Shown here: positions 41 to 44,450 of the stretch, piece after piece
Numbering within the stretch: position 1 is the first letter of the stretch
Layout: the number at the start of each line of letters is the position of its first letter
Made by a program: the position numbers and the translations under genes
From: Auanema rhodensis
Taxonomy: Eukaryota > Animalia > Nematoda
DNA: 64,000 bases
Direction: 5' to 3'
Assembly (NCBI GenBank): GCA_964057225.1
Contig: OZ059899.1
Location: 17,670,001-17,734,000 of the forward strand
The notes under the pieces: generated by a model
What the model saw: the letters and a program-made list of their open reading frames with translations, nothing else
Told to the model about the DNA's origin: nothing
The model's database searches: none

Positions 41-50
41 AGTTGATATC

Positions 51-219: not shown

Positions 220-226
220 TGCTTCC

Positions 227-8400: not shown

Positions 8401-8944
8401 GTTATTCAACGAAAAAATTAATTCTGCAGGGTGAAAATCGAGGATATAAGTGTGAACTTATATCAGTTGATATCTCGGTGCATTTTTAAGCTAGCGCAAA
8501 TCTGATAACACAGATCGACGCAGCTTAAAAATCCGCATCGATTGCACTATACTACATTGAGAAACGCATAATACAAAACTTAGTTATGATCGTTTGAAAA
8601 AAGATGCATTAGTGTATGTTGAGTTTCCATGTACACTCAACATTGCTTCCAAAAACATTTTTACAAAAATTTTTCCGAAAAATTTCGAAATAATTTCGCA
8701 AAAAGTAGATGTTTTTAGAATCCTTTTTTCAAGGCAAAGACGATGGAAATTGTTATTCAACGAAAAAATTGATTCTGCAGGGTGAAAATCGAGGATATAA
8801 GTGTGAACTTATATCAGTTGATATCTCGGTGCATTTTTAAGCTAGCGCAAATCTGATAACACAGATCGACGCAGCTTAAAAATCCGCATCGAATGCACTA
8901 TACTACATTGAAAAACGCTTAATACAAAAATTAGTTATGATCGT
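5435..8944 (+). repeat. Local higher-order repeat: 5-monomer (1755-bp) unit, two copies
   Basis: The same ordered diagnostic monomers recur at +1755: 5435/7190 (ATTACG), 6107/7862 (ATGCTTGAT), 6488/8243 (TTTTGC, ACAAAG), 6839/8594 (TTTTAC, TTCGAA, GAATCC). Boundaries approximate. Confidence 0.85.
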
Positions 8945-14900: not shown

Positions 14901-17900
14901 GTTATGATTGTTTGAAAAAAGATGCATTAGTGTATGTTGAGTTTCCATGTACACTCAACATTGCTTCCAAAAACATTTTGACAAAAATTTTTCCAAAAAA
15001 TTTCAAGATAATTACGCAAAAAGTAAATGTTTTTAGATTCCTTTTTTCAAGGCAAAGACGATGGACAATGTTATTCAACGAAAAAATTAATTCTGCAGGG
15101 TGAAAATCGAGGATATAAGTGTGAACTTATATCAGTTGATATCTCGGTGCATTTTTAAGCTAGCGCAAATCTGATAACACAGATCGACGCAGCTTAAAAA
15201 TCCGCATCGAATGCACTATACTACATTGAAAAACGCTTAATACAAAAATTAGTTATGATCGTTTGAAAAATGATGCATTAGTGTATGTTGAGTTTCCATG
15301 TACACTCAACATTGCTTCCAAAAACATTTTGACAAAAATTTTTCCGAAAAATTTCAAAATAATTTCGCAAAAAGTAGATGTTTTTAGATTCCTTTTTTCA
15401 AGGCAAAGACGATGGACAATGTTATTCAACGAAAAAATTAATTCTGCAGGGTGAAAATCGAGGATATAAGTGTGAACTTATATCAGTTGATATCTCGGTG
15501 CATTTTTAAGCTAGCGCAAATCTGATAACACAGATCGACGCAGCTTAAAAATCCGCATCGAATGCACTATACTACATTGAAAAACGCTTAATACAAAAAT
15601 TAGTTATGATTGTTTGAAAAAAGATGCATTAGTGTATGTTGAGTTTCCATGTACACTCAACATTGCTTCCAAAAACATTTTGACAAAAATTTTTCCAAAA
15701 AATTTCAAGATAATTACGCAAAAAGTAAATGTTTTTAGATTCCTTTTTTCAAGGCAAAGACGATGGACAATGTTATTCAACGAAAAAATTAATTCTGCAG
15801 GGTGAAAATCGAGGATATAAGTGTGAACTTATATCAGTTGATATCTCGGTGCATTTTTAAGCTAGCGCAAATCTGATAACACAGATCGACGCAGCTTAAA
15901 AATCCGCATCGAATGCACTATACTACATTGAAAAACGCTTAATACGAAAATTAGTTATGATCGTTTGAAAAATGATGCATTAGTGTATGTTGAGTTTCCA
16001 TGTACACTCAACATTGCTTCCAAAAACATTTTGACAAAAATTTTTCCAAAAAATTTCAAAATAATTTCGCAAAAAGTAAATGGTTTTAGATTCCTTTTTT
16101 CAAGGCAAAGACGATGGACAATGTTATTCAACGAAAAAATTAATTCTGCAGGGTGAAAATCGAGGATATAAGTGTGAACTTATATCAGTTGATATCTCGG
16201 TGCATTTTTAAGCTAGCGCAAATCTGATAACACAGATCGACGCAGCTTAAAAATCCGCATCGAATGCACTATACTACATTGAAAAACGCTTAATACAAAA
16301 ATTAGTTATGATCGTTTGAAAAAAGATGCATTAGTGTATGTTGAGTTTCCATGTACACTCAACATTGCTTCCAAAAACATTTTGACAAAAATTTTTCCAA
16401 AAAATTTCAAAATAATTTCGCAAAAAGTAAATGGTTTTAGATTCCTTTTTTCAAGGCAAAGACGATGGACAATGTTATTCAACGAAAAAATTAATTCTGC
16501 AGGGTGAAAATCGAGGATATAAGTGTGAACTTATATCAGTTGATATCTCGGTGCATTTTTAAGCTAGCGCAAATCTGATAACACAGATCGACGCAGCTTA
16601 AAAATCCGCATCGAATGCACTATACTACATTGAAAAACGCTTAATACAAAAATTAGTTATGATCGTTTGAAAAATGATGCATTAGTGTATGTTGAGTTTC
16701 CATGTACACTCAACATTGCTTCCAAAAACATTTTGACAAAAATTTTTCCAAAAAATTTCAAAATAATTTCGCAAAAAGTAAATGGTTTTAGATTCCTTTT
16801 TTCAAGGCAAAGACGATGGACAATGTTATTCAACGAAAAAATTAATTCTGCAGGGTGAAAATCGAGGATATAAGTGTGAACTTATATCAGTTGATATCTC
16901 GGTGCATTTTTAAGCTAGCGCAAATCTGATAACACAGATCGACGCAGCTTAAAAATCCGCATCGAATGCACTATACTACATTGAAAAACGCTTAATACAA
17001 AAATTAGTTATGATCGTTTGAAAAAAGATGCATTAGTGTATGTTGAGTTTCCATGTACACTCAACATTGCTTCCAAAAACATTTTGACAAAAATTTTTCC
17101 AAAAAATTTCAAAATAATTTCGCAAAAAGTAAATGGTTTTAGATTCCTTTTTTCAAGGCAAAGACGATGGACAATGTTATTCAACGAAAAAATTAATTCT
17201 GCAGGGTGAAAATCGAGGATATAAGTGTGAACTTATATCAGTTGATATCTCGGTGCATTTTTAAGCTAGCGCAAATCTGATAACACAGATCGACGCAGCT
17301 TAAAAATCCGCATCGAATGCACTATACTACATTGAAAAACGCTTAATACAAAAATTAGTTATGATCGTTTGAAAAAAGATGCATTAGTGTATGTTGAGTT
17401 TCCATGTACACTCAACATTGCTTCCAAAAACATTTTGACAAAAATTTTTCCAAAAAATTTCAAAATAATTTCGCAAAAAGTAAATGTTTTTAGATTCCTT
17501 TTTTCAAGGCAAAGACGATGGACAATGTTATTCAACGAAAAAATTAATTCTGCAGGGTGAAAATCTAGGATATAAGTGTGAACTTATATCAGTTGATATC
17601 TCGGTGCATTTTTAAGCTAGCGCAAATCTGATAACACAGATCGACGCAGCTTAAAAATCCGCATCGAATGCACTATACTACATTGAAAAACGCTTAATAC
17701 AAAAATTAGTGATGATCGTTTGAAAAATGATGTATTAGTGTATGTTGAGTTTCCATGTACACTCAACATTGCTTCCAAAAACATTTTGACAAAAATTTTT
17801 CCAAAAAATTTCAAGATAATTTCGCAAAAAGTAAATGTTTTTAGATTCCTTTTTTCAAGGCAAAGACGATGGACAATGTTATTCAACGAAAAAATTAATT

Positions 17901-20900
17901 CTGCAGGGTGAAAATCGAGGATATAAGTGTGAACTTATATCAGTTGATATCTCGGTGCATTTTTAAGCTAGCGCAAATCTGATAACACAGATCGACGCAG
18001 CTTAAAAATCCGCATCGAATGCACTATACTACATTGAAAAACGCTTAATACAAAAATTAGTTATGATCGTTTGAAAAAAGATGCATTAGTGTATGTTGAG
18101 TTTCCATGTACACTCAACATTGCTTCCAAAAACATTTTGACAAAAATTTTTCCAAAAAATTTCAAAATAATTTCGCAAAAAGTAGATGTTTTTAGATTCC
18201 TTTTTTCAAGGCAAAGACGATGGACAATGTTATTCAACGAAAAAATTAATTCTGCAGGGTGAAAATCGAGGATATAAGTGTGAACTTATATCAGTTGATA
18301 TCTCGGTGCATTTTTAAGCTAGCGCAAATCTGAAAACACAGATCGACGCAGCTTAAAAATCCGCATCGAATGCACTATACTACATTGAAAAACGCTTAAT
18401 ACAAAAATTAGTTATGATTGTTTGAAAAAAGATGCATTAGTGTATGTTGAGTTTCCATGTACACTCAACATTGCTTCCAAAAACATTTTGACAAAAATTT
18501 TTCCAAAAAATTTGAAGATAATTACGCAAAAAGTAAATGTTTTTAGATTCCTTTTTTCAAGGCAAAGACGATGGACAATGTTATTCAACGAAAAAATTAA
18601 TTCTGCAGGGTGAAAATCGAGGATATAAGTGTGAACTTATATCAGTTGATATCTCGGTGCATTTTTAAGCTAGCGCAAATCTGATAACACAGATCGACGC
18701 AGCTTAAAAATCCGCATCGAATGCACTATACTACATTGAAAAACGCTTAATACAAAAATTAGTTATGATCGTTTGAAAAATGATGCATTAGTGTATGTTG
18801 AGTTTCCATGTACACTCAACATTGCTTCCAAAAACATTTTGACAAAAATTTTTCCAAAAAATTTCAAAATAATTTCGCAAAAAGTAAATGTTTTTAGATT
18901 CCTTTTTTCAAGGCAAAGACGATGGACAATGTTATTCAACGAAAAAATTAATTCTGCAGGGTGAAAATCTAGGATATAAGTGTGAACTTATATCAGTTGA
19001 TATCTCGGTGCATTTTTAAGCTAGCGCAAATCTGATAACACAGATCGACGCAGCTTAAAAATCCGCATCGAATGCACTATACTACATTGAAAAACGCTTA
19101 ATACAAAAATTAGTTATGATTGTTTGAAAAAAGATGCATTAGTGTATGTTGAGTTTCCATGTACACTCAACATTGCTTCCAAAAACATTTTGACAAAAAT
19201 TTTTCCAAAAAATTTCAAGATAATTTCGCAAAAAGTAAATGTTTTTAGATTCCTTTTTTCAAGGCAAAGACGATGGACAATGTTATTCAACGAAAAAATT
19301 AATTCTGCAGGGTGAAAATCGAGGATATAAGTGTGAACTTATATCAGTTCATATCTCGGTGCATTTTTAAGCTAGCGCAAATCTGATAACACAGATCGAC
19401 GCAGCTTAAAAATCCGCATCGAATGCACTATACTACATTGAAAAACGCTTAATACAAAAATTAGTTATGATTGTTTGAAAAAAGATGCATTAGTGTATGT
19501 TGAGTTTCCATGTACACTCAACATTGCTTCCAAAAACATTTTGACAAAAATTTTTCCAAAAAATTTCAAAATAATTTCGCAAAAAGTAAATGTTTTTAGA
19601 TTCCTTTTTTCAAGGCAAAGACGATGGACAATGTTATTCAACGAAAAAATTAATTCTGCAGGGTGAAAATCTAGGATATAAGTGTGAACTTATATCAGTT
19701 GATATCTCGGTGCATTTTTAAGCTAGCGCAAATCTGATAACACAGATCGACGCAGCTTAAAAATCCGCATCGAATGCACTATACTACATTGAAAAACGCT
19801 TAATACAAAAATTAGTTATGATCGTTTGAAAAAAGATGCATTAGTGTATGTTGAGTTTCCATGTACACTCAACATTGCTTCCAAAAACATTTTGACAAAA
19901 ATTTTTCCAAAAAATTTCAAAATAATTTCGCAAAAAGTAAATGTTTTTAGATTCCCTTTTTCAAGGCAAAGACGATGGACAATGTTATTCAACGAAAAAA
20001 TTAATTCTGCAGGGTGAAAATCTAGGATATAAGTGTGAACTTATATCAGTTGATATCTCGGTGCATTTTTAAGCTAGCGCAAATCTGATAACACAGATCG
20101 ACGCAGCTTAAAAATCCGCATCGAATGCACTATACTACATTGAAAAACGCTTAATACAAAAATTAGTTATGATTGTTTGAAAAAAGATGCATTAGTGTAT
20201 GTTGAGTTTCCATGTACACTCAACATTGCTTCCAAAAACATTTTGACAAAAATTTTTCCAAAAAATTTCAAAATAATTTCGCAAAAAGTAAATGGTTTTA
20301 GATTCCTTTTTTCAAGGCAAAGACGATGGACAATGTTATTCAACGAAAAAATTAATTCTGCAGGGTGAAAATCGAGGATATAAGTGTGAACTTATATCAG
20401 TTGATATCTCGGTGCATTTTTAAGCTAGCGCAAATCTGATAACACAGATCGACGCAGCTTAAAAATCCGCATCGAATGCACTATACTACATTGAAAAACG
20501 CTTAATACAAAAATTAGTTATGATCGTTTGAAAAATGATGCATTAGTGTATGTTGAGTTTCCATGTACACTCAACATTGCTTCCAAAAACATTTTGACAA
20601 AAATTTTTCCAAAAAATTTCAAAATAATTTCGCAAAAAGTAAATGTTTTTAGATTCCTTTTTTCAAGGCAAAGACGATGGACAATGTTATTCAACGAAAA
20701 AATTAATTCTGCAGGGTGAAAATCTAGGATATAAGTGTGAACTTATATCAGTTGATATCTCGGTGCATTTTTAAGCTAGCGCAAATCTGATAACACAGAT
20801 CGACGCAGCTTAAAAATCCGCATCGAATGCACTATACTACATTGAAAAACGCTTAATACAAAAATTAGTTATGATTGTTTGAAAAAAGATGCATTAGTGT

Positions 20901-23900
20901 ATGTTGAGTTTCCATGTACACTCAACATTGCTTCCAAAAACATTTTGACAAAAATTTTTCCAAAAAATTTCAAGATAATTTCGCAAAAAGTAAATGTTTT
21001 TAGATTCCTTTTTTCAAGGCAAAGACGATGGACAATGTTATTCAACGAAAAAATTAATTCTGCAGGGTGAAAATCGAGGATATAAGTGTGAACTTATATC
21101 AGTTGATATCTCGGTGCATTTTTAAGCTAGCGCAAATCTGATAACACAGATCGACGCAGCTTAAAAATCCGCATCGAATGCACTATACTACATTGAAAAA
21201 CGCTTAATACAAAAATTAGTTATGATTGTTTGAAAAAAGATGCATTAGTGTATGTTGAGTTTCCATGTACACTCAACATTGCTTCCAAAAACATTTTGAC
21301 AAAAATTTTTCCAAAAAATTTCAAAATAATTTCGCAAAAAGTAAATGTTTTTAGATTCCTTTTTTCAAGGCAAAGACGATGGACAATGTTATTCAACGAA
21401 AAAATTAATTCTGCAGGGTGAAAATCTAGGATATAAGTGTGAACTTATATCAGTTGATATCTCGGTGCATTTTTAAGCTAGCGCAAATCTGATAACACAG
21501 ATCGACGCAGCTTAAAAATCCGCATCGAATGCACTATACTACATTGAAAAACGCTTAATACAAAAATTAGTTATGATCGTTTGAAAAAAGATGCATTAGT
21601 GTATGTTGAGTTTCCATGTACACTCAACATTGCTTCCAAAAACATTTTGACAAAAATTTTTCCAAAAAATTTCAAAATAATTTCGCAAAAAGTAAATGTT
21701 TTTAGATTCCTTTTTTCAAGGCAAAGACGATGGACAATGTTATTCAACGAAAAAATTAATTCTGCAGGGTGAAAATCTAGGATATAAGTGTGAACTTATA
21801 TCAGTTGATATCTCGGTGCATTTTTAAGCTAGCGCAAATCTGATAACACAGATCGACGCAGCTTAAAAATCCGCATCGAATGCACTATACTACATTGAAA
21901 AACGCTTAATACAAAAATTAGTTATGATTGTTTGAAAAAAGATGCATTAGTGTATGTTGAGTTTCCATGTACACTCAACATTGCTTCCAAAAACATTTTG
22001 ACAAAAATTTTTCCAAAAAATTTCAAGATAATTTCGCAAAAAGTAAATGTTTTTAGATTCCTTTTTTCAAGGCAAAGACGATGGACAATGTTATTCAACG
22101 AAAAAATTAATTCTGCAGGGTGAAAATCGAGGATATAAGTGTGAACTTATATCAGTTGATATCTCGGTGCATTTTTAAGCTAGCGCAAATCTGATAACAC
22201 AGATCGACGCAGCTTAAAAATCCGCATCGAATGCACTATACTACATTGAAAAACGCTTAATACAAAAATTAGTTATGATTGTTTGAAAAAAGATGCATTA
22301 GTGTATGTTGAGTTTCCATGTACACTCAACATTGCTTCCAAAAACATTTTGACAAAAATTTTTCCAAAAAATTTCAAAATAATTTCGCAAAAAGTAAATG
22401 TTTTTAGATTCCTTTTTTCAAGGCAAAGACGATGGACAATGTTATTCAACGAAAAAATTAATTCTGCAGGGTGAAAATCTAGGATATAAGTGTGAACTTA
22501 TATCAGTTGATATCTCGGTGCATTTTTAAGCTAGCGCAAATCTGATAACACAGATCGACGCAGCTTAAAAATCCGCATCGAATGCACTATACTACATTGA
22601 AAAACGCTTAATACAAAAATTAGTTATGATCGTTTGAAAAAAGATGCATTAGTGTATGTTGAGTTTCCATGTACACTCAACATTGCTTCCAAAAACATTT
22701 TGACAAAAATTTTTCCAAAAAATTTCAAAATAATTTCGCAAAAAGTAAATGTTTTTAGATTCCCTTTTTCAAGGCAAAGACGATGGACAATGTTATTCAA
22801 CGAAAAAATTAATTCTGCAGGGTGAAAATCTAGGATATAAGTGTGAACTTATATCAGTTGATATCTCGGTGCATTTTTAAGCTAGCGCAAATCTGATAAC
22901 ACAGATCGACGCAGCTTAAAAATCCGCATCGAATGCACTATACTACATTGAAAAACGCTTAATACAAAAATTAGTTATGATTGTTTGAAAAAAGATGCAT
23001 TAGTGTATGTTGAGTTTCCATGTACACTCAACATTGCTTCCAAAAACATTTTGACAAAAATTTTTCCAAAAAATTTCAAAATAATTTCGCAAAAAGTAAA
23101 TGGTTTTAGATTCCTTTTTTCAAGGCAAAGACGATGGACAATGTTATTCAACGAAAAAATTAATTCTGCAGGGTGAAAATCGAGGATATAAGTGTGAACT
23201 TATATCAGTTGATATCTCGGTGCATTTTTAAGCTAGCGCAAATCTGATAACACAGATCGACGCAGCTTAAAAATCCGCATCGAATGCACTATACTACATT
23301 GAAAAACGCTTAATACAAAAATTAGTTATGATTGTTTGAAAAAAGATGCATTAGTGTATGTTGAGTTTCCATGTACACTCAACATTGCTTCCAAAAACAT
23401 TTTGACAAAAATTTTTCCAAAAAATTTCAAAATAATTTCGCAAAAAGTAAATGGTTTTAGATTCCTTTTTTCAAGGCAAAGACGATGGACAATGTTATTC
23501 AACGAAAAAATTAATTCTGCAGGGTGAAAATCGAGGATATAAGTGTGAACTTATATCAGTTGATATCTCGGTGCATTTTTAAGCTAGCGCAAATCTGATA
23601 ACACAGATCGACGCAGCTTAAAAATCCGCATCGAATGCACTATACTACATTGAAAAACGCTTAATACAAAAATTAGTTATGATCGTTTGAAAAATGATGC
23701 ATTAGTGTATGTTGAGTTTCCATGTACACTCAACATTGCTTCCAAAAACATTTTGACAAAAATTTTTCCAAAAAATTTCAAAATAATTTCGCAAAAAGTA
23801 AATGTTTTTAGATTCCTTTTTTCAAGGCAAAGACGATGGACAATGTTATTCAACGAAAAAATTAATTCTGCAGGGTGAAAATCTAGGATATAAGTGTGAA

Positions 23901-26224
23901 CTTATATCAGTTGATATCTCGGTGCATTTTTAAGCTAGCGCAAATCTGATAACACAGATCGACGCAGCTTAAAAATCCGCATCGAATGCACTATACTACA
24001 TTGAAAAACGCTTAATACAAAAATTAGTTATGATTGTTTGAAAAAAGATGCATTAGTGTATGTTGAGTTTCCATGTACACTCAACATTGCTTCCAAAAAC
24101 ATTTTGACAAAAATTTTTCCAAAAAATTTCAAGATAATTTCGCAAAAAGTAAATGTTTTTAGATTCCTTTTTTCAAGGCAAAGACGATGGACAATGTTAT
24201 TCAACGAAAAAATTAATTCTGCAGGGTGAAAATCGAGGATATAAGTGTGAACTTATATCAGTTGATATCTCGGTGCATTTTTAAGCTAGCGCAAATCTGA
24301 TAACACAGATCGACGCAGCTTAAAAATCCGCATCGAATGCACTATACTACATTGAAAAACGCTTAATACAAAAATTAGTTATGATCGTTTGAAAAATGAT
24401 GCATTAGTGTATGTTGAGTTTCCATGTACACTCAACATTGCTTCCAAAAACATTTTGACAAAAATTTTTCCAAAAAATTTCAAAATAATTTCGCAAAAAG
24501 TAAATGTTTTTAGATTCCTTTTTTCAAGGCAAAGACGATGGACAATGTTATTCAACGAAAAAATCAATTCTGCAGGGTGAAAATCTAGGATATAAGTGTG
24601 AACTTATATCAGTTGATATCTCGGTGCATTTTTAAGCTAGCGCAAATCTGATAACACAGATCGACGCAGCTTAAAAATCCGCATCGAATGCACTATACTA
24701 CATTGAAAAACGCTTAATACAAAAATTAGTTATGATTGTTTGAAAAAAGATGCATTAGTGTATGTTGAGTTTCCATGTACACTCAACATTGCTTCCAAAA
24801 ACATTTTGACAAAAATTTTTCCAAAAAATTTCAAGATAATTTCGCAAAAAGTAAATGTTTTTAGATTCCTTTTTTCAAGGCAAAGACGATGGACAATGTT
24901 ATTCAACGAAAAAATTAATTCTGCAGGGTGAAAATCGAGGATATAAGTGTGAACTTATATCAGTTGATATCTCGGTGCATTTTTAAGCTAGCGCAAATCT
25001 GATAACACAGATCGACGCAGCTTAAAAATCCGCATCGAATGCACTATACTACATTGAAAAACGCTTAATACAAAAATTAGTTATGATCGTTTGAAAAATG
25101 ATGCATTAGTGTATGTTGAGTTTCCATGTACACTCAACATTGCTTCCAAAAACATTTTGACAAAAATTTTTCCAAAAAATTTCAAAATAATTTCGCAAAA
25201 AGTAAATGTTTTTAGATTCCTTTTTTCAAGGCAAAGACGATGGACAATGTTATTCAACGAAAAAATTAATTCTGCAGGGTGAAAATCTAGGATATAAGTG
25301 TGAACTTATATCAGTTGATATCTCGGTGCATTTTTAAGCTAGCGCAAATCTGATAACACAGATCGACGCAGCTTAAAAATCCGCATCGAATGCACTATAC
25401 TACATTGAAAAACGCTTAATACAAAAATTAGTTATGATCGTTTGAAAAATGATGCATTAGTGTATGTTGAGTTTCCATGTACACTCAACATTGCTTCCAA
25501 AAACATTTTGACAAAAATTTTTCCGAAAAATTTCAAAATAATTTCGCAAAAAGTAGATGTTTTTAGATTCCTTTTTTCAAGGCAAAGACGATGGACAATG
25601 TTATTTAACGAAAAAATTAATTCTGCAGGGTGAAAATCGAGGATATAAGTGTGAACTTATATCAGTTGATATCTCGGTGCATTTTTAAGCTAGCGCAAAT
25701 CTGATAACACAGATCGACGCAGCTTAAAAATCCGCATCGAATGCACTATACTACATTGAAAAACGCTTAATACAAAAATTAGTTATGATTGTTTGAAAAC
25801 AGATGCATTAGTGTATGTTGAGTTTCCATGTACACTCAACATTGCTTCCAAAAACATTTTGACAAAAATTTTTCCAAAAAATTTCAAAATAATTTCGCAA
25901 AAAGTAAATGTTTTTAGATTCCTTTTTTCAAGGCAAAGACGATGGACAATGTTATTCAACGAAAAAATTAATTCTGCAGGGTGAAAATCTAGGATATAAG
26001 TGTGAACTTATATCAGTTGATATCTCGGTGCATTTTTAAGCTAGCGCAAATCTGATAACACAGATCGACGCAGCTTAAAAATCCGCATCGAATGCACTAT
26101 ACTACATTGAAAAACGCTTAATACAAAAATTAGTTATGATCGTTTGAAAAAAGATGCATTAGTGTATGTTGAGTTTCCATGTACACTCAACATTGCTTCC
26201 AAAAACATTTTGACAAAAATTTTT

Positions 26225-26388
26225 CCAAAAAATTTCAAAATAATTTCGCAAAAAGTAAATGTTTTTAGATTCCCTTTTTCAAGGCACGGTTCCCGGTTCG
26301 GCCCCCAAAAAATTTCAAAATAATTTCGCAAAAAGTAAATGTTTTTAGATTCCCTTTTTCAAGGCACGGTTCCCGGTTCGGCCCCCAA
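26225..26388 (+). repeat. 80-bp tandem duplication of the satellite/insert junction (also at +1154, +4063, +5217)
   Basis: 26225-26304 is repeated at 26305-26384, with identity extending through CCAA to 26388. CCAA microhomology is shared by satellite TTTTCCAAAA and insert GCCCCCAAGT. Confidence 0.93.
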
Positions 26389-26738
26389 GTTATATTAGAG
26401 GAAACAAAAAGATCAAATAAGCAAACGATTTATTATAAAAAAAATAGAAATAATCAAACAAAAAATGAAAACAGAATCCCAAACTGCCTTTAATTTATTT
26501 CGAAAAAACAACAATACAATTTTTAGGCCAAAATTATGAATTTGGTTGCAAAAGATGATTACGGTAGTTTCATTGTCAAGGGAGCATTCTTTTGAAGACC
26601 AATTTTATCTTCTTTTTCTTTCATCGTAATTGAATCCAATCGTTTCTAAATGTTATTTTCAATGATATTTTGTTGTTATAAATATCTTTCATAATATTCT
26701 ATAATCAATATATTTAACAATATTCTCATTTCTTAACA
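26367..26738 (-). mobile_element. LTR-retrotransposon fragment, copy 1: single LTR (26388-26738) + tRNA-Pro PBS (26370-26387) + 3 nt
   Basis: Non-satellite 372 bp lying between satellite TCAAGGCA and AAGACGATGG. The minus strand begins TGTTAAG, has AATAAA at 26494-26499 and 26429-26434 with T-rich tracts, ends TAACT, and runs directly into TGGGGGCCGAACCGGGAA. No coding sequence. The terminal CA is ambiguous by 2 bp with the target. Confidence 0.8.
26370..26387 (-). promoter_or_regulatory. Primer-binding site complementary to the 3' 18 nt of tRNA-Pro (extra copy at 26290-26307 from the 80-bp duplication)
   Basis: Plus strand TT-CCCGG-TTCGGCC-C-CCA parses as tRNA positions 59-60, T-stem 3' strand 61-65, acceptor 3' strand 66-72, discriminator C73 and CCA. 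It resembles the classical tRNA-Pro PBS TGGGGGCTCGTCCGGGAT. The isotype is recalled from memory, not searched. Confidence 0.8.
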
Positions 26739-27520
26739 AAGACGATGGACAATGTTATTCAACGAAAAAATTAATTCTGCAGGGTGAAAATCTAGGATAT
26801 AAGTGTGAACTTATATCAGTTGATATCTCGGTGCATTTTTAAGCTAGCGCAAATCTGATAACACAGATCGACGCAGCTTAAAAATCCGCATCGAATGCAC
26901 TATACTACATTGAAAAACGCTTAATACAAAAATTAGTTATGATTGTTTGAAAAAAGATGCATTAGTGTATGTTGAGTTTCCATGTACACTCAACATTGCT
27001 TCCAAAAACATTTTGACAAAAATTTTTCCAAAAAATTTCAAAATAATTTCGCAAAAAGTAAATGTTTTTAGATTCCTTTTTTCAAGGCAAAGACGATGGA
27101 CAATGTTATTCAACGAAAAAATTAATTCTGCAGGGTGAAAATCTAGGATATAAGTGTGAACTTATATCAGTTGATATCTCGGTGCATTTTTAAGCTAGCG
27201 CAAATCTGATAACACAGATCGACGCAGCTTAAAAATCCGCATCGAATGCACTATACTACATTGAAAAACGCTTAATACAAAAATTAGTTATGATCGTTTG
27301 AAAAAAGATGCATTAGTGTATGTTGAGTTTCCATGTACACTCAACATTGCTTCCAAAAACATTTTGACAAAAATTTTTCCAAAAAATTTCAAAATAATTT
27401 CGCAAAAAGTAAATGTTTTTAGATTCCCTTTTTCAAGGCACGGTTCCCGGTTCGGCCCCCAAAAAATTTCAAAATAATTTCGCAAAAAGTAAATGTTTTT
27501 AGATTCCCTTTTTCAAGGCA

Positions 27521-27892
27521 CGGTTCCCGGTTCGGCCCCCAAGTTATATTAGAGGAAACAAAAAGATCAAATAAGCAAACGATTTATTATAAAAAAAATA
27601 GAAATAATCAAACAAAAAATGAAAACAGAATCCCAAACTGCCTTTAATTTATTTCGAAAAAACAACAATACAATTTTTAGGCCAAAATTATGAATTTGGT
27701 TGCAAAAGATGATTACGGTAGTTTCATTGTCAAGGGAGCATTCTTTTGAAGACCAATTTTATCTTCTTTTTCTTTCATCGTAATTGAATCCAATCGTTTC
27801 TAAATGTTATTTTCAATGATATTTTGTTGTTATAAATATCTTTCATAATATTCTATAATCAATATATTTAACAATATTCTCATTTCTTAACA
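27521..27892 (-). mobile_element. LTR + PBS fragment, copy 2 (LTR 27542-27892, PBS 27524-27541)
   Basis: Same sequence and junctions as copy 1, offset +1154. Confidence 0.8.
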
Positions 27893-30429
27893 AAGACGAT
27901 GGACAATGTTATTCAACGAAAAAATTAATTCTGCAGGGTGAAAATCTAGGATATAAGTGTGAACTTATATCAGTTGATATCTCGGTGCATTTTTAAGCTA
28001 GCGCAAATCTGATAACACAGATCGACGCAGCTTAAAAATCCGCATCGAATGCACTATACTACATTGAAAAACGCTTAATACAAAAATTAGTTATGATTGT
28101 TTGAAAAAAGATGCATTAGTGTATGTTGAGTTTCCATGTACACTCAACATTGCTTCCAAAAACATTTTGACAAAAATTTTTCCAAAAAATTTCAAAATAA
28201 TTTCGCAAAAAGTAAATGGTTTTAGATTCCTTTTTTCAAGGCAAAGACGATGGACAATGTTATTCAACGAAAAAATTAATTCTGCAGGGTGAAAATCGAG
28301 GATATAAGTGTGAACTTATATCAGTTGATATCTCGGTGCATTTTTAAGCTAGCGCAAATCTGATAACACAGATCGACGCAGCTTAAAAATCCGCATCGAA
28401 TGCACTATACTACATTGAAAAACGCTTAATACAAAAATTAGTTATGATCGTTTGAAAAATGATGCATTAGTGTATGTTGAGTTTCCATGTACACTCAACA
28501 TTGCTTCCAAAAACATTTTGACAAAAATTTTTCCAAAAAATTTCAAAATAATTTCGCAAAAAGTAAATGGTTTTAGATTCCTTTTTTCAAGGCAAAGACG
28601 ATGGACAATGTTATTCAACGAAAAAATTAATTCTGCAGGGTGAAAATCGAGGATATAAGTGTGAACTTATATCAGTTGATATCTCGGTGCATTTTTAAGC
28701 TAGCGCAAATCTGATAACACAGATCGACGCAGCTTAAAAATCCGCATCGAATGCACTATACTACATTGAAAAACGCTTAATACAAAAATTAGTTATGATC
28801 GTTTGAAAAATGATGCATTAGTGTATGTTGAGTTTCCATGTACACTCAACATTGCTTCCAAAAACATTTTGACAAAAATTTTTCCGAAAAATTTCAAAAT
28901 AATTTCGCAAAAAGTAAATGGTTTTAGATTCCTTTTTTCAAGGCAAAGACGATGGACAATGTTATTCAACGAAAAAATTAATTCTGCAGGGTGAAAATCG
29001 AGGATATAAGTGTGAACTTATATCAGTTGATATCTCGGTGCATTTTTAAGCTAGTGCAAATCTGATAACACAGATCGACGCAGCTTAAAAATCCGCATCG
29101 AATGCACTATACTACATTGAAAAACGCTTAATACAAAAATTAGTTATGATCGTTTGAAAAATGATGCATTAGTGTATGTTGAGTTTCCATGTACACTCAA
29201 CATTGCTTCCAAAAACATTTTGACAAAAATTTTTCCGAAAAATTTCAAAATAATTTCGCAAAAAGTAGATGTTTTTAGATTCCTTTTTTCAAGGCAAAGA
29301 CGATGGACAATGTTATTTAACGAAAAAATTAATTCTGCAGGGTGAAAATCGAGGATATAAGTGTGAACTTATATCAGTTGATATCTCGGTGCATTTTTAA
29401 GCTAGCGCAAATCTGATAACACAGATCGACGCAGCTTAAAAATCCGCATCGAATGCATTATACGACATTGAGAAACCCTCAATACAAAAATTAGTTATGA
29501 TCGTTTAAAAAATGATGCATTAGTGTGTGTTGAGTTTCCATGTACACTCAACATTGCTTCCAAAAACATTTTGACAAAAATTTTTCCGAAAAATTTCAAA
29601 ATAATTTCGCAAAAAGTAGATGTTTTTAGATTCCTTTTTTCAAGGCAAAGACGATGGACAATGTTATTTAACGAAAAAATTAATTCTGCAGGGTGAAAAT
29701 CGAGGATATAAGTGTGAACTTATATCAGTTGATATCTCGGTGCATTTTTAAGCTAGCGCAAATCTGATAACACAGATCGACGCAGTTTAAAAATCCGCAT
29801 CGAATGCACTATACTACATTGAAAAACGCTTAATACAAAAATTAGTTATGATTGTTTGAAAACAGATGCATTAGTGTATGTTGAGTTTCCATGTACACTC
29901 AACATTGCTTCCAAAAACATTTTGACAAAAATTTTTCCAAAAAATTTCAAAATAATTTCGCAAAAAGTAAATGTTTTTAGATTCCTTTTTTCAAGGCAAA
30001 GACGATGGACAATGTTATTCAACGAAAAAATTAATTCTGCAGGGTGAAAATCTAGGATATAAGTGTGAACTTATATCAGTTGATATCTCGGTGCATTTTT
30101 AAGCTAGCGCAAATCTGATAACACAGATCGACGCAGCTTAAAAATCCGCATCGAATGCACTATACTACATTGAAAAACGCTTAATACAAAAATTAGTTAT
30201 GATCGTTTGAAAAAAGATGCATTAGTGTATGTTGAGTTTCCATGTACACTCAACATTGCTTCCAAAAACATTTTGACAAAAATTTTTCCAAAAAATTTCA
30301 AAATAATTTCGCAAAAAGTAAATGTTTTTAGATTCCCTTTTTCAAGGCACGGTTCCCGGTTCGGCCCCCAAAAAATTTCAAAATAATTTCGCAAAAAGTA
30401 AATGTTTTTAGATTCCCTTTTTCAAGGCA

Positions 30430-30801
30430 CGGTTCCCGGTTCGGCCCCCAAGTTATATTAGAGGAAACAAAAAGATCAAATAAGCAAACGATTTATTATA
30501 AAAAAAATAGAAATAATCAAACAAAAAATGAAAACAGAATCCCAAACTGCCTTTAATTTATTTCGAAAAAACAACAATACAATTTTTAGGCCAAAATTAT
30601 GAATTTGGTTGCAAAAGATGATTACGGTAGTTTCATTGTCAAGGGAGCATTCTTTTGAAGACCAATTTTATCTTCTTTTTCTTTCATCGTAATTGAATCC
30701 AATCGTTTCTAAATGTTATTTTCAATGATATTTTGTTGTTATAAATATCTTTCATAATATTCTATAATCAATATATTTAACAATATTCTCATTTCTTAAC
30801 A
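30430..30801 (-). mobile_element. LTR + PBS fragment, copy 3 (LTR 30451-30801, PBS 30433-30450)
   Basis: Same sequence and junctions as copy 1, offset +4063. Confidence 0.8.
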
Positions 30802-31583
30802 AAGACGATGGACAATGTTATTCAACGAAAAAATTAATTCTGCAGGGTGAAAATCTAGGATATAAGTGTGAACTTATATCAGTTGATATCTCGGTGCATT
30901 TTTAAGCTAGCGCAAATCTGATAACACAGATCGACGCAGCTTAAAAATCCGCATCGAATGCACTATACTACATTGAAAAACGCTTAATACAAAAATTAGT
31001 TATGATTGTTTGAAAAAAGATGCATTAGTGTATGTTGAGTTTCCATGTACACTCAACATTGCTTCCAAAAACATTTTGACAAAAATTTTTCCAAAAAATT
31101 TCAAAATAATTTCGCAAAAAGTAAATGTTTTTAGATTCCTTTTTTCAAGGCAAAGACGATGGACAATGTTATTCAACGAAAAAATTAATTCTGCAGGGTG
31201 AAAATCTAGGATATAAGTGTGAACTTATATCAGTTGATATCTCGGTGCATTTTTAAGCTAGCGCAAATCTGATAACACAGATCGACGCAGCTTAAAAATC
31301 CGCATCGAATGCACTATACTACATTGAAAAACGCTTAATACAAAAATTAGTTATGATCGTTTGAAAAAAGATGCATTAGTGTATGTTGAGTTTCCATGTA
31401 CACTCAACATTGCTTCCAAAAACATTTTGACAAAAATTTTTCCAAAAAATTTCAAAATAATTTCGCAAAAAGTAAATGTTTTTAGATTCCCTTTTTCAAG
31501 GCACGGTTCCCGGTTCGGCCCCCAAAAAATTTCAAAATAATTTCGCAAAAAGTAAATGTTTTTAGATTCCCTTTTTCAAGGCA

Positions 31584-31955
31584 CGGTTCCCGGTTCGGCC
31601 CCCAAGTTATATTAGAGGAAACAAAAAGATCAAATAAGCAAACGATTTATTATAAAAAAAATAGAAATAATCAAACAAAAAATGAAAACAGAATCCCAAA
31701 CTGCCTTTAATTTATTTCGAAAAAACAACAATACAATTTTTAGGCCAAAATTATGAATTTGGTTGCAAAAGATGATTACGGTAGTTTCATTGTCAAGGGA
31801 GCATTCTTTTGAAGACCAATTTTATCTTCTTTTTCTTTCATCGTAATTGAATCCAATCGTTTCTAAATGTTATTTTCAATGATATTTTGTTGTTATAAAT
31901 ATCTTTCATAATATTCTATAATCAATATATTTAACAATATTCTCATTTCTTAACA
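31584..31955 (-). mobile_element. LTR + PBS fragment, copy 4 (LTR 31605-31955, PBS 31587-31604)
   Basis: Same sequence and junctions as copy 1, offset +5217. Confidence 0.8.
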
Positions 31956-34900
31956 AAGACGATGGACAATGTTATTCAACGAAAAAATTAATTCTGCAGG
32001 GTGAAAATCTAGGATATAAGTGTGAACTTATATCAGTTGATATCTCGGTGCATTTTTAAGCTAGCGCAAATCTGATAACACAGATCGACGCAGCTTAAAA
32101 ATCCGCATCGAATGCACTATACTACATTGAAAAACGCTTAATACAAAAATTAGTTATGATTGTTTGAAAAAAGATGCATTAGTGTATGTTGAGTTTCCAT
32201 GTACACTCAACATTGCTTCCAAAAACATTTTGACAAAAATTTTTCCAAAAAATTTCAAAATAATTTCGCAAAAAGTAAATGGTTTTAGATTCCTTTTTTC
32301 AAGGCAAAGACGATGGACAATGTTATTCAACGAAAAAATTAATTCTGCAGGGTGAAAATCGAGGATATAAGTGTGAACTTATATCAGTTGATATCTCGGT
32401 GCATTTTTAAGCTAGCGCAAATCTGATAACACAGATCGACGCAGCTTAAAAATCCGCATCGAATGCACTATACTACATTGAAAAACGCTTAATACAAAAA
32501 TTAGTTATGATCGTTTGAAAAATGATGCATTAGTGTATGTTGAGTTTCCATGTACACTCAACATTGCTTCCAAAAACATTTTGACAAAAATTTTTCCAAA
32601 AAATTTCAAAATAATTTCGCAAAAAGTAAATGGTTTTAGATTCCTTTTTTCAAGGCAAAGACGATGGACAATGTTATTCAACGAAAAAATTAATTCTGCA
32701 GGGTGAAAATCGAGGATATAAGTGTGAACTTATATCAGTTGATATCTCGGTGCATTTTTAAGCTAGCGCAAATCTGATAACACAGATCGACGCAGCTTAA
32801 AAATCCGCATCGAATGCACTATACTACATTGAAAAACGCTTAATACAAAAATTAGTTATGATCGTTTGAAAAATGATGCATTAGTGTATGTTGAGTTTCC
32901 ATGTACACTCAACATTGCTTCCAAAAACATTTTGACAAAAATTTTTCCGAAAAATTTCAAAATAATTTCGCAAAAAGTAAATGGTTTTAGATTCCTTTTT
33001 TCAAGGCAAAGACGATGGACAATGTTATTCAACGAAAAAATTAATTCTGCAGGGTGAAAATCGAGGATATAAGTGTGAACTTATATCAGTTGATATCTCG
33101 GTGCATTTTTAAGCTAGTGCAAATCTGATAACACAGATCGACGCAGCTTAAAAATCCGCATCGAATGCACTATACTACATTGAAAAACGCTTAATACAAA
33201 AATTAGTTATGATCGTTTGAAAAATGATGCATTAGTGTATGTTGAGTTTCCATGTACACTCAACATTGCTTCCAAAAACATTTTGACAAAAATTTTTCCG
33301 AAAAATTTCAAAATAATTTCGCAAAAAGTAGATGTTTTTAGATTCCTTTTTTCAAGGCAAAGACGATGGACAATGTTATTTAACGAAAAAATTAATTCTG
33401 CAGGGTGAAAATCGAGGATATAAGTGTGAACTTATATCAGTTGATATCTCGGTGCATTTTTAAGCTAGCGCAAATCTGATAACACAGATCGACGCAGCTT
33501 AAAAATCCGCATCGAATGCATTATACGACATTGAGAAACCCTCAATACAAAAATTAGTTATGATCGTTTAAAAAATGATGCATTAGTGTGTGTTGAGTTT
33601 CCATGTACACTCAACATTGCTTCCAAAAACATTTTGACAAAAATTTTTCCGAAAAATTTCAAAATAATTTCGCAAAAAGTAGATGTTTTTAGATTCCTTT
33701 TTTCAAGGCAAAGACGATGGACAATGTTATTTAACGAAAAAATTAATTCTGCAGGGTGAAAATCGAGGATATAAGTGTGAACTTATATCAGTTGATATCT
33801 CGGTGCATTTTTAAGCTAGCGCAAATCTGATAACACAGATCGACGCAGTTTAAAAATCCGCATCGAATGCACTATACTACATTGAAAAACGCTTAATACA
33901 AAAATTAGTTATGATTGTTTGAAAAATAATGCATTAGTGTATGTTGAGTTTCCATGTACACTCAACATTGCTTCCAAAAACATTTTGACAAAAATTTTTC
34001 CAAAAAATTTCAAAATAATTTCGCAAAAAGTAAATGTTTTTAGATTCCTTTCTCCAAGGCAAAGACGATGGACAATGTTATTCAACGAAAAAATTAATTC
34101 TGCAGGGTGAAAATCGAGGATATAAGTGTGAACTTATATCAGTTGATATCTCGGTGCATTTTTAAGCTAGCGCAAATCTGATAACACAGATCGACGCAGC
34201 TTAAAAATCCGCATCGAATGCACTATACTACATTGAAAAACGCTTAATACAAAAATTAGTTATGATTGTTTGAAAAAAGATGCATTAGTGTATGTTGAGT
34301 TTCCATGTACACTCAACATTGCTTCCAAAAACATTTTGACAAAAATTTTTCCAAAAAATTTCAAGATAATTACGCAAAAAGTAAATGTTTTTAGATTCCT
34401 TTTTTCAAGGCAAAGACGATGGACAATGTTATTCAACGAAAAAATTAATTCTGCAGGGTGAAAATCGAGGATATAAGTGTGAACTTATATCAGTTGATAT
34501 CTCGGTGCATTTTTAAGCTAGCGCAAATCTGATAACACAGATCGACGCAGCTTAAAAATCCGCATCGAATGCACTATACTACATTGAAAAACGCTTAATA
34601 CAAAAATTAGTTATGATCGTTTGAAAAATGATGCATTAGTGTATGTTGAGTTTCCATGTACACTCAACATTGCTTCCAAAAACATTTTGACAAAAATTTT
34701 TCCAAAAAATTTCAAAATAATTTCGCAAAAAGTAAATGGTTTTAGATTCCTTTTTTCAAGGCAAAGACGATGGACAATGTTATTCAACGAAAAAATTAAT
34801 TCTGCAGGGTGAAAATCGAGGATATAAGTGTGAACTTATATCAGTTGATATCTCGGTGCATTTTTAAGCTAGCGCAAATCTGATAACACAGATCGACGCA

Positions 34901-37779
34901 GCTTAAAAATCCGCATCGAATGCACTATACTACATTGAAAAACGCTTAATACAAAAATTAGTTATGATCGTTTGAAAAAAGATGCATTAGTGTATGTTGA
35001 GTTTCCATGTACACTCAACATTGCTTCCAAAAACATTTTGACAAAAATTTTTCCAAAAAATTTCAAAATAATTTCGCAAAAAGTAAATGTTTTTAGATTC
35101 CTTTTTTCAAGGCAAAGACGATGGACAATGTTATTCAACGAAAAAATTGATTCTGCAGGGTGAAAATCGAGGATATAAGTGTGAACTTATATCAGTTGAT
35201 ATCTCGGTGCATTTTTAAGCTAGCGCAAATCTGATAACACAGCTCGACGCAGCTTAAAAATCCGCATCGAATGCTTTATACAACATTGAGAAACGCTTAA
35301 TACAAAAATTAGTTATGATCGTTTGAAAAAAGATGCATTAGTGTATGTTGAGTTTCCATGTACACTCAACATTGCTTCCAAAAACATTTTGACAAAAATT
35401 TTTCCAAAAAATTTCAAAATAATTTCGCAAAAAGTAAATGGTTTTAGATTCCTTTTTTCAAGGCAAAGACGATGGACAATGTTATTCAACGAAAAAATTA
35501 ATTCTGCAGGGTGAAAATCGAGGATATAAGTGTGAACTTATATCAGTTGATATCTCGGTGCATTTTTAAGCTAGCGCAAATCTGATAACACAGATCGACG
35601 CAGCTTAAAAATCCGCATCGAATGCTTTATACTACATTGAAAAACGCTTAATACAAAAATTAGTTATGATCGTTTGAAAAATGATGCATTAGTGTATGTT
35701 GAGTTTCCATGTACACTCAACATTGCTTCCAAAAACATTTTGACAAAAATTTTTCCAAAAAATTTCAAAATAATTTCGCAAAAAGTAAATGGTTTTAGAT
35801 TCCTTTTTTCAAGGCAAAGACGATGGACAATGTTATTCAACGAAAAAATTAATTCTGCAGGGTGAAAATCGAGGATATAAGTGTGAACTTATATCAGTTG
35901 ATATCTCGGTGCATTTTTAAGCTAGCGCAAATCTGATAACACAGATCGACGCAGCTTAAAAATCCGCATCGAATGCACTATACTACATTGAAAAACGCTT
36001 AATACAAAAATTAGTTATGATCGTTTGAAAAATGATGCATTAGTGTATGTTGAGTTTCCATGTACACTCAACATTGCTTCCAAAAACATTTTGACAAAAA
36101 TTTTTCCGAAAAATTTCAAAATAATTTCGCAAAAAGTAAATGGTTTTAGATTCCTTTTTTCAAGGCAAAGACGATGGACAATGTTATTCAACGAAAAAAT
36201 TAATTCTGCAGGGTGAAAATCGAGGATATAAGTGTGAACTTATATCAGTTGATATCTCGGTGCATTTTTAAGCTAGTGCAAATCTGATAACACAGATCGA
36301 CGCAGCTTAAAAATCCGCATCGAATGCACTATACTACATTGAAAAACGCTTAATACAAAAATTAGTTATGATTGTTTGAAAAAAGATGCATTAGTGTATG
36401 TTGAGTTTCCATGTACACTCAACATTGCTTCCAAAAACATTTTGACAAAAATTTTTCCAAAAAATTTCAAGATAATTACGCAAAAAGTAAATGTTTTTAG
36501 ATTCCTTTTTTCAAGGCAAAGACGATGGACAATGTTATTCAACGAAAAAATTAATTCTGCAGGGTGAAAATCGAGGATATAAGTGTGAACTTATATCAGT
36601 TGATATCTCGGTGCATTTTTAAGCTAGCGCAAATCTGATAACACAGATCGACGCAGCTTAAAAATCCGCATCGAATGCACTATACTACATTGAAAAACGC
36701 TTAATACAAAAATTAGTTATGATTGTTTGAAAAAAGATGCATTAGTGTATGTTGAGTTTCCATGTACACTCAACATTGCTTCCAAAAACATTTTGACAAA
36801 AATTTTTCCAAAAAATTTCAAGATAATTACGCAAAAAGTAAATGTTTTTAGATTCCTTTTTTCAAGGCAAAGACGATGGACAATGTTATTCAACGAAAAA
36901 ATTAATTCTGCAGGGTGAAAATCGAGGATATAAGTGTGAACTTATATCAGTTGATATCTCGGTGCATTTTTAAGCTAGCGCAAATCTGATAACACAGATC
37001 GACGCAGCTTAAAAATCCGCATCGAATGCACTATACTACATTGAAAAACGCTTAATACAAAAATTAGTTATGATCGTTTGAAAAATGATGCATTAGTGTA
37101 TGTTGAGTTTCCATGTACACTCAACATTGCTTCCAAAAACATTTTGACAAAAATTTTTCCAAAAAATTTCAAAATAATTTCGCAAAAAGTAAATGGTTTT
37201 AGATTCCTTTTTTCAAGGCAAAGACGATGGACAATGTTATTCAACGAAAAAATTAATTCTGCAGGGTGAAAATCGAGGATATAAGTGTGAACTTATATCA
37301 GTTGATATCTCGGTGCATTTTTAAGCTAGCGCAAATCTGATAACACAGATCGACGCAGCTTAAAAATCCGCATCGAATGCACTATACTACATTGAAAAAC
37401 GCTTAATACAAAAATTAGTTATGATCGTTTGAAAAAAGATGCATTAGTGTATGTTGAGTTTCCATGTACACTCAACATTGCTTCCAAAAACATTTTGACA
37501 AAAATTTTTCCAAAAAATTTCAAAATAATTTCGCAAAAAGTAAATGTTTTTAGATTCCTTTTTTCAAGGCAAAGACGATGGACAATGTTATTCAACGAAA
37601 AAATTAATTCTGCAGGGTGAAAATCGAGGATATAAGTGTGAACTTATATCAGTTGATATCTCGGTGCATTTTTAAGCTAGCGCAAATCTGATAACACAGA
37701 TCGACGCAGCTTAAAAATCCGCATCGAATGCACTATACTACATTGAAAAACGCTTAATACAAAAATTAGTTATGATCGT

Positions 37780-40234
37780 TTGAAAAAAGATGCATTAGTG
37801 TATGTTGAGTTTCCATGTACACTCAACATTGCTTCCAAAAACATTTTGACAAAAATTTTTCCAAAAAATTTCAAAATAATTTCGCAAAAAGTAAATGTTT
37901 TTAGATTCCTTTTTTCAAGGCAAAGACGATGGACAATGTTATTCAACGAAAAAATTGATTCTGCAGGGTGAAAATCGAGGATATAAGTGTGAACTTATAT
38001 CAGTTGATATCTCGGTGCATTTTTAAGCTAGCGCAAATCTGATAACACAGATCGACGCAGCTTAAAAATCCGCATCGAATGCTTTATACAACATTGAGAA
38101 ACGCTTAATACAAAAATTAGTTATGATCGTTTGAAAAAAGATGCATTAGTGTATGTTGAGTTTCCATGTACACTCAACATTGCTTCCAAAAACATTTTGA
38201 CAAAAATTTTTCCAAAAAATTCAAAATAATTTCGCAAAAAGTAAATGTTTTTAGATTCCTTTTTTCAAGGCAAAGACGATGGACAATGTTATTCAACGAA
38301 AAAATCAATTCTGCAGGGTGAAAATCGAGGATATAAGTGTGAATTTATATCAGTTGATATCTCGGTGCATTTTTAAGCTAGCGCAAATCTGATAACACAG
38401 ATCGACGCAGCTTAAAAATCCGCATCGATTGCACTATACTACATTGAAAAACGCTTAATACAAAAATTAGTTATGATCGTTTGAAAAAAGATGCATTAGT
38501 GTATGTTGAGTTTCCATGTACACTCAACATTGCTTCCAAAAACATTTTGACAAAAATTTTTCCAAAAAATTTCAAAATAATTTCGCAAAAAGTAAATGTT
38601 TTTAGATTCCTTTTTTCAAGGCAAAGACGATGGACAATGTTATTCAACGAAAAAATTGATTCTGCAGGGTGAAAATCGAGGATATAAGTGTGAACTTATA
38701 TCAGTTGATATCTCGGTGCATTTTTAAGCTAGCGCAAATCTGATAACACAGATCGACGCAGCTTAAAAATCCGCATCGAATGCTTTATACAACATTGAGA
38801 AACGCTTAATACAAAAATTAGTTATGATCGTTTGAAAAAAGATGCATTAGTGTATGTTGAGTTTCCATGTACACTCAACATTGCTTCCAAAAACATTTTG
38901 ACAAAAATTTTTCCAAAAAATTTCAAAATAATTTCGCAAAAAGTAAATGTTTTTAGATTCCTTTTTTCAAGGCAAAGACGATGGACAATGTTATTCAACG
39001 AAAAAATCAATTCTGCAGGGTGAAAATCGAGGATATAAGTGTGAATTTATATCAGTTGATATCTCGGTGCATTTTTAAGCTAGCGCAAATCTGATAACAC
39101 AGATCGACGCAGCTTAAAAATCCGCATCGATTGCACTATACTACATTGAAAAACGCTTAATACAAAAATTAGTTATGATCGTTTGAAAAAAGATGCATTA
39201 GTGTATGTTGAGTTTCCATGTACACTCAACATTGCTTCCAAAAACATTTTGACAAAAATTTTTCCAAAAAATTTCAAAATAATTTCGCAAAAAGTAAATG
39301 TTTTTAGATTCCTTTTTTCAAGGCAAAGACGATGGACAATGTTATTCAACGAAAAAATTGATTCTGCAGGGTGAAAATCGAGGATATAAGTGTGAACTTA
39401 TATCAGTTGATATCTCGGTGCATTTTTAAGCTAGCGCAAATCTGATAACACAGATCGACGCAGCTTAAAAATCCGCATCGAATGCTTTATACAACATTGA
39501 GAAACGCTTAATACAAAAATTAGTTATGATCGTTTGAAAAAAGATGCATTAGTGTATGTTGAGTTTCCATGTACACTCAACATTGCTTCCAAAAACATTT
39601 TGACAAAAATTTTTCCAAAAAATTCAAAATAATTTCGCAAAAAGTAAATGTTTTTAGATTCCTTTTTTCAAGGCAAAGACGATGGACAATGTTATTCAAC
39701 GAAAAAATCAATTCTGCAGGGTGAAAATCGAGGATATAAGTGTGAATTTATATCAGTTGATATCTCGGTGCATTTTTAAGCTAGCGCAAATCTGATAACA
39801 CAGATCGACGCAGCTTAAAAATCCGCATCGATTGCACTATACTACATTGAAAAACGCTTAATACAAAAATTAGTTATGATCGTTTGAAAAAAGATGCATT
39901 AGTGTATGTTGAGTTTCCATGTACACTCAACATTGCTTCCAAAAACATTTTGACAAAAATTTTTCCAAAAAATTTCAAAATAATTTCGCAAAAAGTAAAT
40001 GTTTTTAGATTCCTTTTTTCAAGGCAAAGACGATGGACAATGTTATTCAACGAAAAAATTGATTCTGCAGGGTGAAAATCGAGGATATAAGTGTGAACTT
40101 ATATCAGTTGATATCTCGGTGCATTTTTAAGCTAGCGCAAATCTGATAACACAGCTCGACGCAGCTTAAAAATCCGCATCGAATGCTTTATACAACATTG
40201 AGAAACGCTTAATACAAAAATTAGTTATGATCGT
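37780..40234 (+). repeat. Local dimer/tetramer higher-order repeat with a shared 1-bp deletion
   Basis: ATTGATTC and ATCAATTC/GAATTTA monomers alternate. 350-bp monomers (AAAAAATTC, one T missing) occur at ~38220 and ~39623, 1403 bp apart. Confidence 0.8.
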
Positions 40235-43200: not shown

Positions 43201-44450
43201 CAATGTTATTCAACGAAAAAATTAATTCTGCAGGGTGAAAATCGAGGATATAAGTGTGAACTTATATCAGTTGATATCTCGGTGCATTTTTAAGCTAGCG
43301 CAAATCTGATAACACAGATCGACGCAGCTTAAAAATCCGCATCGAATGCACTATGCTACATTGAAAAACGCTTAATACAAAAATTAGTTATGATCGTTTG
43401 AAAAAAGATGCATTAGTGTATGTTGAGTTTCCATGTACACTCAACATTGCTTCCAAAAACATTTTGACAAAAATTTTTCCAAAAAATTTCAAAATAATTT
43501 CGCAAAAAGTAGATGTTTTTAGATTCCTTTTCTCAAGGCAAAGACGATGGACAATGTTATTCAACGAAAAAATTAATTCTGCAGGGTGAAAATCGAGGAT
43601 ATAAGTGTGAATTTATATCAGTTGATATCTCGGTGCATTTTTAAGCTAGCGCAAATCTGATAACACAGATCGACGCAGCTTAAAAATCCGCATCGAATGC
43701 ACTATACTACATTGAAGAACGCTTAATACAAAAATTAGTTATGATCGTTTGAAAAAAGATGCATTAGTGTATGTTGAGTTTCCATGTACACTCAACATTG
43801 CTTCCAAAAACATTTTGACAAAAATTTTTCCAAAAAATTTCAAAATAATTTCGCAAAAAGTAAATGTTTTTAGATTCCTTTTTTCAAGGCAAAGACGATG
43901 GACATTGTTATTCAACGAAAAAATTGATTCTGCAGGGTGAAAATCGAGGATATAAGTGTGAACTTATATCAGTTGATATCTCGGTGCATTTTTAAGCTAG
44001 CGCAAATCTGATAACACAGCTCGACGCAGCTTAAAAATCCGCATCGAATGCTTTATACAACATTGAGAAACGCTTAATACAAAAATTAGTTATGATCGTT
44101 TGAAAAAAGATGCATTAGTGTATGTTGAGTTTCCATGTACACTCAACATTGCTTCCAAAAACATTTTGACAAAAATTTTTCCAAAAAATTTCAAAATAAT
44201 TTCGCAAAAAGTAAATGTTTTTAGATTCCTTTTTTCAAGGCAAAGACGATGGACAATGTTATTCAACGAAAAAATTGATTCTGCAGGGTGAAAATCGAGG
44301 ATATAAGTGTGAACTTATATCAGTTGATATCTCGGTGCATTTTTAAGCTAGCGCAAATCTGATAACACAGATCGACGCAGCTTAAAAATCCGCATCGAAT
44401 GCTTTATACAACATTGAGAAACGCTTAATACAAAAATTAGTTATGATCGT

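Follow-up and report, generated by a model that had tools for sequence, protein, structure and literature searches.

The locus analysed here raises the question of how a segment ending in the complement of a tRNA 3' end came to lie inside a monomer of satellite DNA. The window, that is, the whole stretch of 64 kb that was analysed, is one homogeneous tandem satellite array (positions 1..64000, no strand assigned) with a period of 351 bp and a GC content of approximately 31.5%. When each monomer was anchored on a conserved 10-mer, 177 monomers were counted, 162 of them exactly 351 bp long. The monomers are approximately 98.4% alike at every multiple of 351 bp that was tested, which leaves a difference of about 1.6% between ordinary monomers, and no higher-order period is evident at the multiples tested in positions 1-25700 and 52600-58200. 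The array departs from 351-bp monomers only in four intervals of 803 bp, which hold the insert described below, and in two monomers shortened to 282 and 289 bp. The latter, located at 52316-52598 and 58214-58503, carry a 69-bp deletion near 52588 and a 62-bp deletion near 58348, respectively, and shift the phase of the array.

A foreign insert of 372 bp interrupts one monomer. The first-pass annotation had read its minus strand at 26738-26367 as a block, an 18-mer, the bases CCG and then satellite, and reading of the sequence gave the same order: an AT-rich block of 351 bp (26388..26738, 23.6% GC), the 18-mer TGGGGGCCGAACCGGGAA (26370..26387), which is either a primer-binding-site sequence or a copied primer, and three extra bases CCG (26367..26369), all on the minus strand. 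At the left joint of this strand the satellite ends in CGTCTT and the block begins with TGTTAAG; at the right joint CCG is followed by satellite that resumes at TGCCTTG. The count of the motif in the window is far above chance, its 17-base core being matched 8 times, versus no match in 100 shuffled sequences.

The site as it was before the insertion can still be read in the same window. A rare variant, GAAAAAGGG, lies just to the right of the joint and is found in the insert-bearing monomer and in the uninterrupted monomers around 22777 and 19969. The first of these paralogous monomers (22700..22800, minus strand) presents the empty site as CGTCTT immediately followed by TGCCTTGAAAAAGGG, and a second such monomer lies around 19969. 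Both match the filled monomer base for base along 200 bp to the left and 59 bp to the right of the joint, and both read CGTCTT joined directly to TGCCTTG. Thus the insertion added 372 bp with neither duplication nor loss of target sequence, leaving only a 2-bp TG/CA ambiguity, and the earlier statement that the satellite is continuous across the insert, with at most 2 bp of ambiguity and no target-site duplication, is confirmed by the two empty sites.

As to the nature of the block, LTRs usually have the termini 5'-TG...CA-3' within short inverted repeats. The block starts with TGTTAAG and ends with TATAACT, which gives a 5' TG and a 4-bp terminal inverted repeat (GTTA at the TGTTA start, TAAC at the TAACT end), and its 3' end is CT, not CA. 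It contains two AATAAA motifs, and an 18/18 complement of tRNA-Pro begins at the base directly after it. No polypurine tract was seen upstream of the block in the insert copy in the window. Neither a paired copy of the block flanking coding sequence nor gag/pol or any other internal region was seen in the 64-kb window, and an exact look-up of a 33-aa open reading frame inside the block returned no record. Judged by the adjoining perfect 18-nt primer-binding-site sequence, the TG start, the terminal inverted repeat with the AATAAA motifs, and the lack of a polypurine tract upstream, set against the CT end, the block is probably an LTR and putatively a whole one (U3-R-U5).

Two other identities of the block were considered and rejected. 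The block has exactly the length of the satellite period, 351 bp, and could be suspected to be a diverged monomer; its best local alignment with two satellite monomers scores 26, no better than shuffled sequences (24.5 +/- 3.2), and the whole insert is 372 bp, with which the register is lost. The equal length of two unrelated sequences looks like a coincidence, one by which the period-351 call of TRF runs straight through the insert. A solo LTR resembles the insert in having a single LTR and no internal region, but solo LTRs arise by LTR-LTR recombination, keep the target-site duplication of 4-6 bp and lack a primer-binding site, whereas here the duplication is absent and the 18-mer is present.

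By base-for-base comparison, the 18-mer is fully complementary to positions 59-76 of a eukaryote-type mature tRNA-Pro, the terminal CCA included. The corresponding genes were sought with a pattern that consisted of the window's own letters for positions 59-73, to which the universal G53 and bases of the T-loop were added so that a plain primer-binding site could not match it. In a metagenome collection the pattern matched 13 loci; 12 of them hold 13 genes, all of which ARAGORN assigned to tRNA-Pro(AGG), and the thirteenth is cut by the contig end and hence untyped. A prokaryote genome collection yielded two further matches, a tRNA-Pro(TGG) belonging to the same type and a locus with no recognisable tRNA. 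Each of the 14 public genes that share this 3' end and could be typed is therefore a tRNA-Pro (13 AGG and 1 TGG). The matching genes are not the host's own; they come from unrelated metagenomes with 43-53% GC. In the metagenomic genes CCA is not encoded, and a T-rich sequence follows, as in eukaryotic genes. CCA is added only to mature tRNA, and with genes that do not encode it the CCA of the window must stem from a mature tRNA copied by reverse transcription. The tRNA-Pro primer and its mature origin, both asserted in the first-pass annotation, are thus upheld. No tRNA gene was found in the window, and no known RNA family (Rfam match) was found in the region.

The tRNA-Pro(TGG) gene from the prokaryote collection is one of seven tRNA genes clustered in 1.4 kb (2729-4141 of L015), on a contig labelled as a Magnetovibrio metagenome-assembled genome, and it differs little from the eukaryote-type metagenomic tRNA-Pro(AGG). 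Contamination is one possible explanation of the contig, and a mobile or viral cluster of tRNA genes is another.

The complementarity to tRNA-Pro is perfect through position 59 and breaks exactly at position 58, the site of m1A58, where the insert reads G and the matching tRNA-Pro genes have A; the earlier parse of the tRNA-like part, ending at position 59 with G in place of A58, agrees with the public genes. Read on the tRNA-sense strand, the three extra bases place C, G, and G in positions 56, 57, and 58. In the 13 genes of the 12 complete metagenomic loci these positions hold C, A, and A, and the tRNA-Pro(TGG) of L015 and a fragment, L013, which share the same 3' end, have C, G, and A. Compared with a tRNA-Pro of this G57 type, the 21-mer formed by the 18-mer and CCG matches at 20 of 21 bases, the sole mismatch falling on the m1A58 position, and CCG itself matches positions 58-56 at two of three bases. 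It is possible that CCG is filler templated from an internal GAACCG, which occurs twice, so that realignment of a stalled 3' end could add these bases. A short read-through of tRNA positions 58-56 is equally possible, and CCG may also belong to the leader of the parent element; the sequence in the window favours none of the three readings. Two further sources were discarded: skipping of the T-loop by the polymerase, which with two of three bases matched explains CCG no better than the other readings, and fold-back priming, for which there is no paired primer end.

The first-pass annotation had treated the insert as single, and in this respect it has to be corrected, for four copies with 100% identity, eight 21-mers and nested duplications had been missed. 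Besides copy A, the complete insert of block, 18-mer and CCG is present on the minus strand as copy B (27521..27892), copy C (30430..30801), and copy D (31584..31955). In copy A, the 21-mer together with 59 bp of satellite forms an 80-bp tandem duplication (26225..26388, minus strand; in TRF, period 80, 2.0 copies, 100% match), which is bounded by the 4-bp microhomology TTGG and places a second 21-mer at 26287-26307, 80 bp further on. The same duplication accompanies copy B (27379-27542), copy C (30288-30451), and copy D (31442-31605), and this accounts for the eight 21-mers. All four copies lie in nested tandem segmental duplications (25724..33925, no strand assigned), where a 4063-bp unit occurs twice and each such unit contains a 1154-bp unit twice. 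At the offset of 4063 bp, the identity is perfect over 25724-29862 (with 29787-33925), and at the offset of 1154 bp it is perfect over 25801-27064. The 1154-bp unit corresponds to two monomers plus 351, 21, and 80 bp. At ordinary monomer divergence approximately 65 differences would be expected over 4 kb, and none is present; therefore the 1154-bp and 4063-bp duplications are very recent, unless this is an effect of the assembly. The four copies represent one insertion event followed by amplification, and they do not replicate each other independently.

Several other features of the array touch this region. The only long perfect repeats in the array are those carrying the insert. One end of the 69-bp deletion in the 282-bp monomer is approximately 10 bp from the position that the insert occupies in its own monomer, and the deletion covers the right edge of the 80-bp duplication, so that a single segment of the monomer, approximately 80 bp long, contains three breakpoints of rearrangements. 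The 21-mer also lies inside open reading frames of 59-65 aa that arise mechanically from the satellite (26134-26331 on the minus strand and 26144-26323 on the plus strand). A satellite open reading frame was searched by exact look-up and by protein search with no homologue and no record returned, and thus nothing suggests a coding role for the frames around the 21-mer.

The explanation that we favour, with a probability of about one half, is that a strong-stop-like intermediate was joined into a break in the satellite by end joining; this estimate covers the sub-case in which the tRNA copy extends beyond position 58. A tRNA-Pro-primed LTR retroelement would have made an LTR-length by-product of reverse transcription, consisting of U3-R-U5 and the copied 3' end of the primer tRNA, either as plus-strand strong-stop DNA or as the duplex formed with the minus strand. 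Host end joining, not integrase, would then have joined this by-product into a double-strand break of one satellite monomer. The donor, we infer, would be a cDNA intermediate, and the joint a product of end joining with 0-2 bp of microhomology. The later history comprised the 80-bp microhomology-bounded tandem duplication of the 21-mer and 59 bp of satellite, then the 1154-bp tandem duplication, and then the 4063-bp tandem duplication; none of the three has yet acquired a mismatch, which makes them recent. We prefer the capture of a strong-stop intermediate since it predicts both ends of the insert and the absent target duplication. The first-pass annotation had already proposed that such an intermediate patched a satellite break, and its proposal stands in part: tRNA-Pro, CCA, the 18-nt boundary and the lack of a target duplication agree with it, and the three extra bases beyond the 18 and the CT end of the block weigh against it. 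At the 3' end of the insert the perfect complement is interrupted at position 58, and the satellite begins after 18 + 3 nt instead of after 18.

The main competitor, which we consider rather unlikely though by no means negligible, is a truncated provirus or full-length cDNA, reduced to its 5' LTR, its primer-binding site and the initial 3-5 nt of its leader either after deletion from an integrated element or after capture of a broken linear cDNA. An 18-nt perfect primer-binding site beside an LTR is what the 5' end of any such element carries, and thus the 18-mer cannot separate capture from truncation. The bases CCG are most simply read as leader sequence under truncation, and the 2 bp of TG repeated at the right joint might have promoted a deletion; should the leader of the parent element carry on with CCG, truncation of a provirus or cDNA would account for the insert as well as the capture of a strong-stop intermediate does. 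On the other hand, such a deletion needs one breakpoint within 3-5 nt of the primer-binding site and another precisely on the outer boundary of the 3' target-site duplication, or at the equivalent phase of some later monomer, for the satellite to read on without a seam, and internal sequence, a 3' LTR and a target duplication were not found anywhere in the 64 kb. Capture is preferred because a random truncation needs both a break within approximately 3 nt of the end of the primer-binding site and the exact satellite phase (1 in 351). In a variant of the capture explanation that we regard as unlikely, the tRNA copy itself extends to position 56: reverse transcriptase would have got past m1A58 with a misincorporation and copied G57 and C56 before it stopped, so that all 21 nt are primer-derived and no filler is needed. 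Consistent with this, G57 in the tRNA-Pro(TGG) of L015 and in the L013 fragment gives the 20 of 21 matches with the mismatch at 58; passage of m1A with misincorporation is substantial in vitro (PMC4787781), and with another primer tRNA a further stop has been documented around positions 54/55 (PMC8599865). However, 12 of the 13 metagenomic genes have A57, which makes two mismatches in three bases, the laboratory enzyme in an m1A-U context mainly misincorporates dATP and not the dCTP needed here (PMC4787781), the documented second stop is one base later than here (PMC8599865), and C56 and G57 would match by luck in about 1 of 16 cases.

All junctions were read in one assembly of a highly uniform satellite. 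An artefact of assembly or polishing, in which a chimeric or mis-collapsed read put a retroelement end into the satellite and the assembler propagated it, has to be weighed as well. Such satellites are hard to assemble, and the four copies with their multi-kilobase flanks are 100% identical, versus a difference of approximately 1.6% between ordinary monomers. Nevertheless we hold an artefact to be very improbable, given that the joints are exact at the level of single bases and match the phase of the monomer, that the 80-bp duplication bears a biological signature of microhomology, and that the nested 1154/4063-bp pattern is of the kind that unequal exchange generates.

The favoured capture of a strong-stop intermediate has counterparts in well-studied systems. 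Plus-strand strong-stop DNA of retroviruses consists of U3-R-U5 and 18 copied tRNA bases, with the stop before m1A58 (PMC8599865). The structure predicted for the insert is likewise U3-R-U5 plus 18 nt of copied tRNA, and its complementarity breaks at 58; the insert differs in the three bases that follow the 18, and its U3 start is putative. In yeast, the LTR is the hotspot for the capture of Ty1 cDNA at breaks, and nucleotides that occur only in the cDNA were found in 40 of 56 such inserts (PMC11372161). The yeast captures and the present insert have in common that integrase takes no part, that a target-site duplication is absent, that the donor comes from the LTR region and is end-joined, and that the ends show features peculiar to a cDNA intermediate (PMC11372161). 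In contrast to the yeast captures, the event described here is natural, fixed and germline-transmitted in a non-yeast host, and the insert, apparently a whole LTR with the copied primer end, lies within a satellite and was later amplified with the array. The aborted strong-stop LTR products of the Arabidopsis element ATHILA show similarity to the 106B centromeric repeat family; there, as here, LTR-only products of reverse transcription are tied to centromeric or satellite repeats (PMC7197481). The link between ATHILA and 106B is a suggestion from similarity, whereas at the present locus the end copied from the tRNA and the empty site are readable, and the satellite is unrelated to the LTR.

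Overall, the best reading of the insert is that of a natural case of a process already known, in which a reverse-transcription intermediate is captured by end joining and then amplified within the satellite. The capture of cDNA intermediates at breaks is well documented in yeast experiments, and in natural genomes such events are rarely readable to the base. Here the empty and the filled site are present in one window, the copied primer end marks which intermediate took part, and the later duplications show how a satellite adopts and multiplies foreign DNA. A bolder version, which we hold to be quite improbable, is that the locus preserves, as a natural fossil that can still be read, a plus-strand strong-stop intermediate that extends a few bases past m1A58, was patched into a satellite break, and is now spreading as a composite 1154-bp repeat unit; if true, this would provide a direct route by which by-products of reverse transcription seed new satellite variants. 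If the parent element confirms the favoured explanation, the locus would be clean natural evidence of an integrase-independent route of LTR sequences into satellite DNA, as has already been suggested for LTR-derived centromeric repeats.
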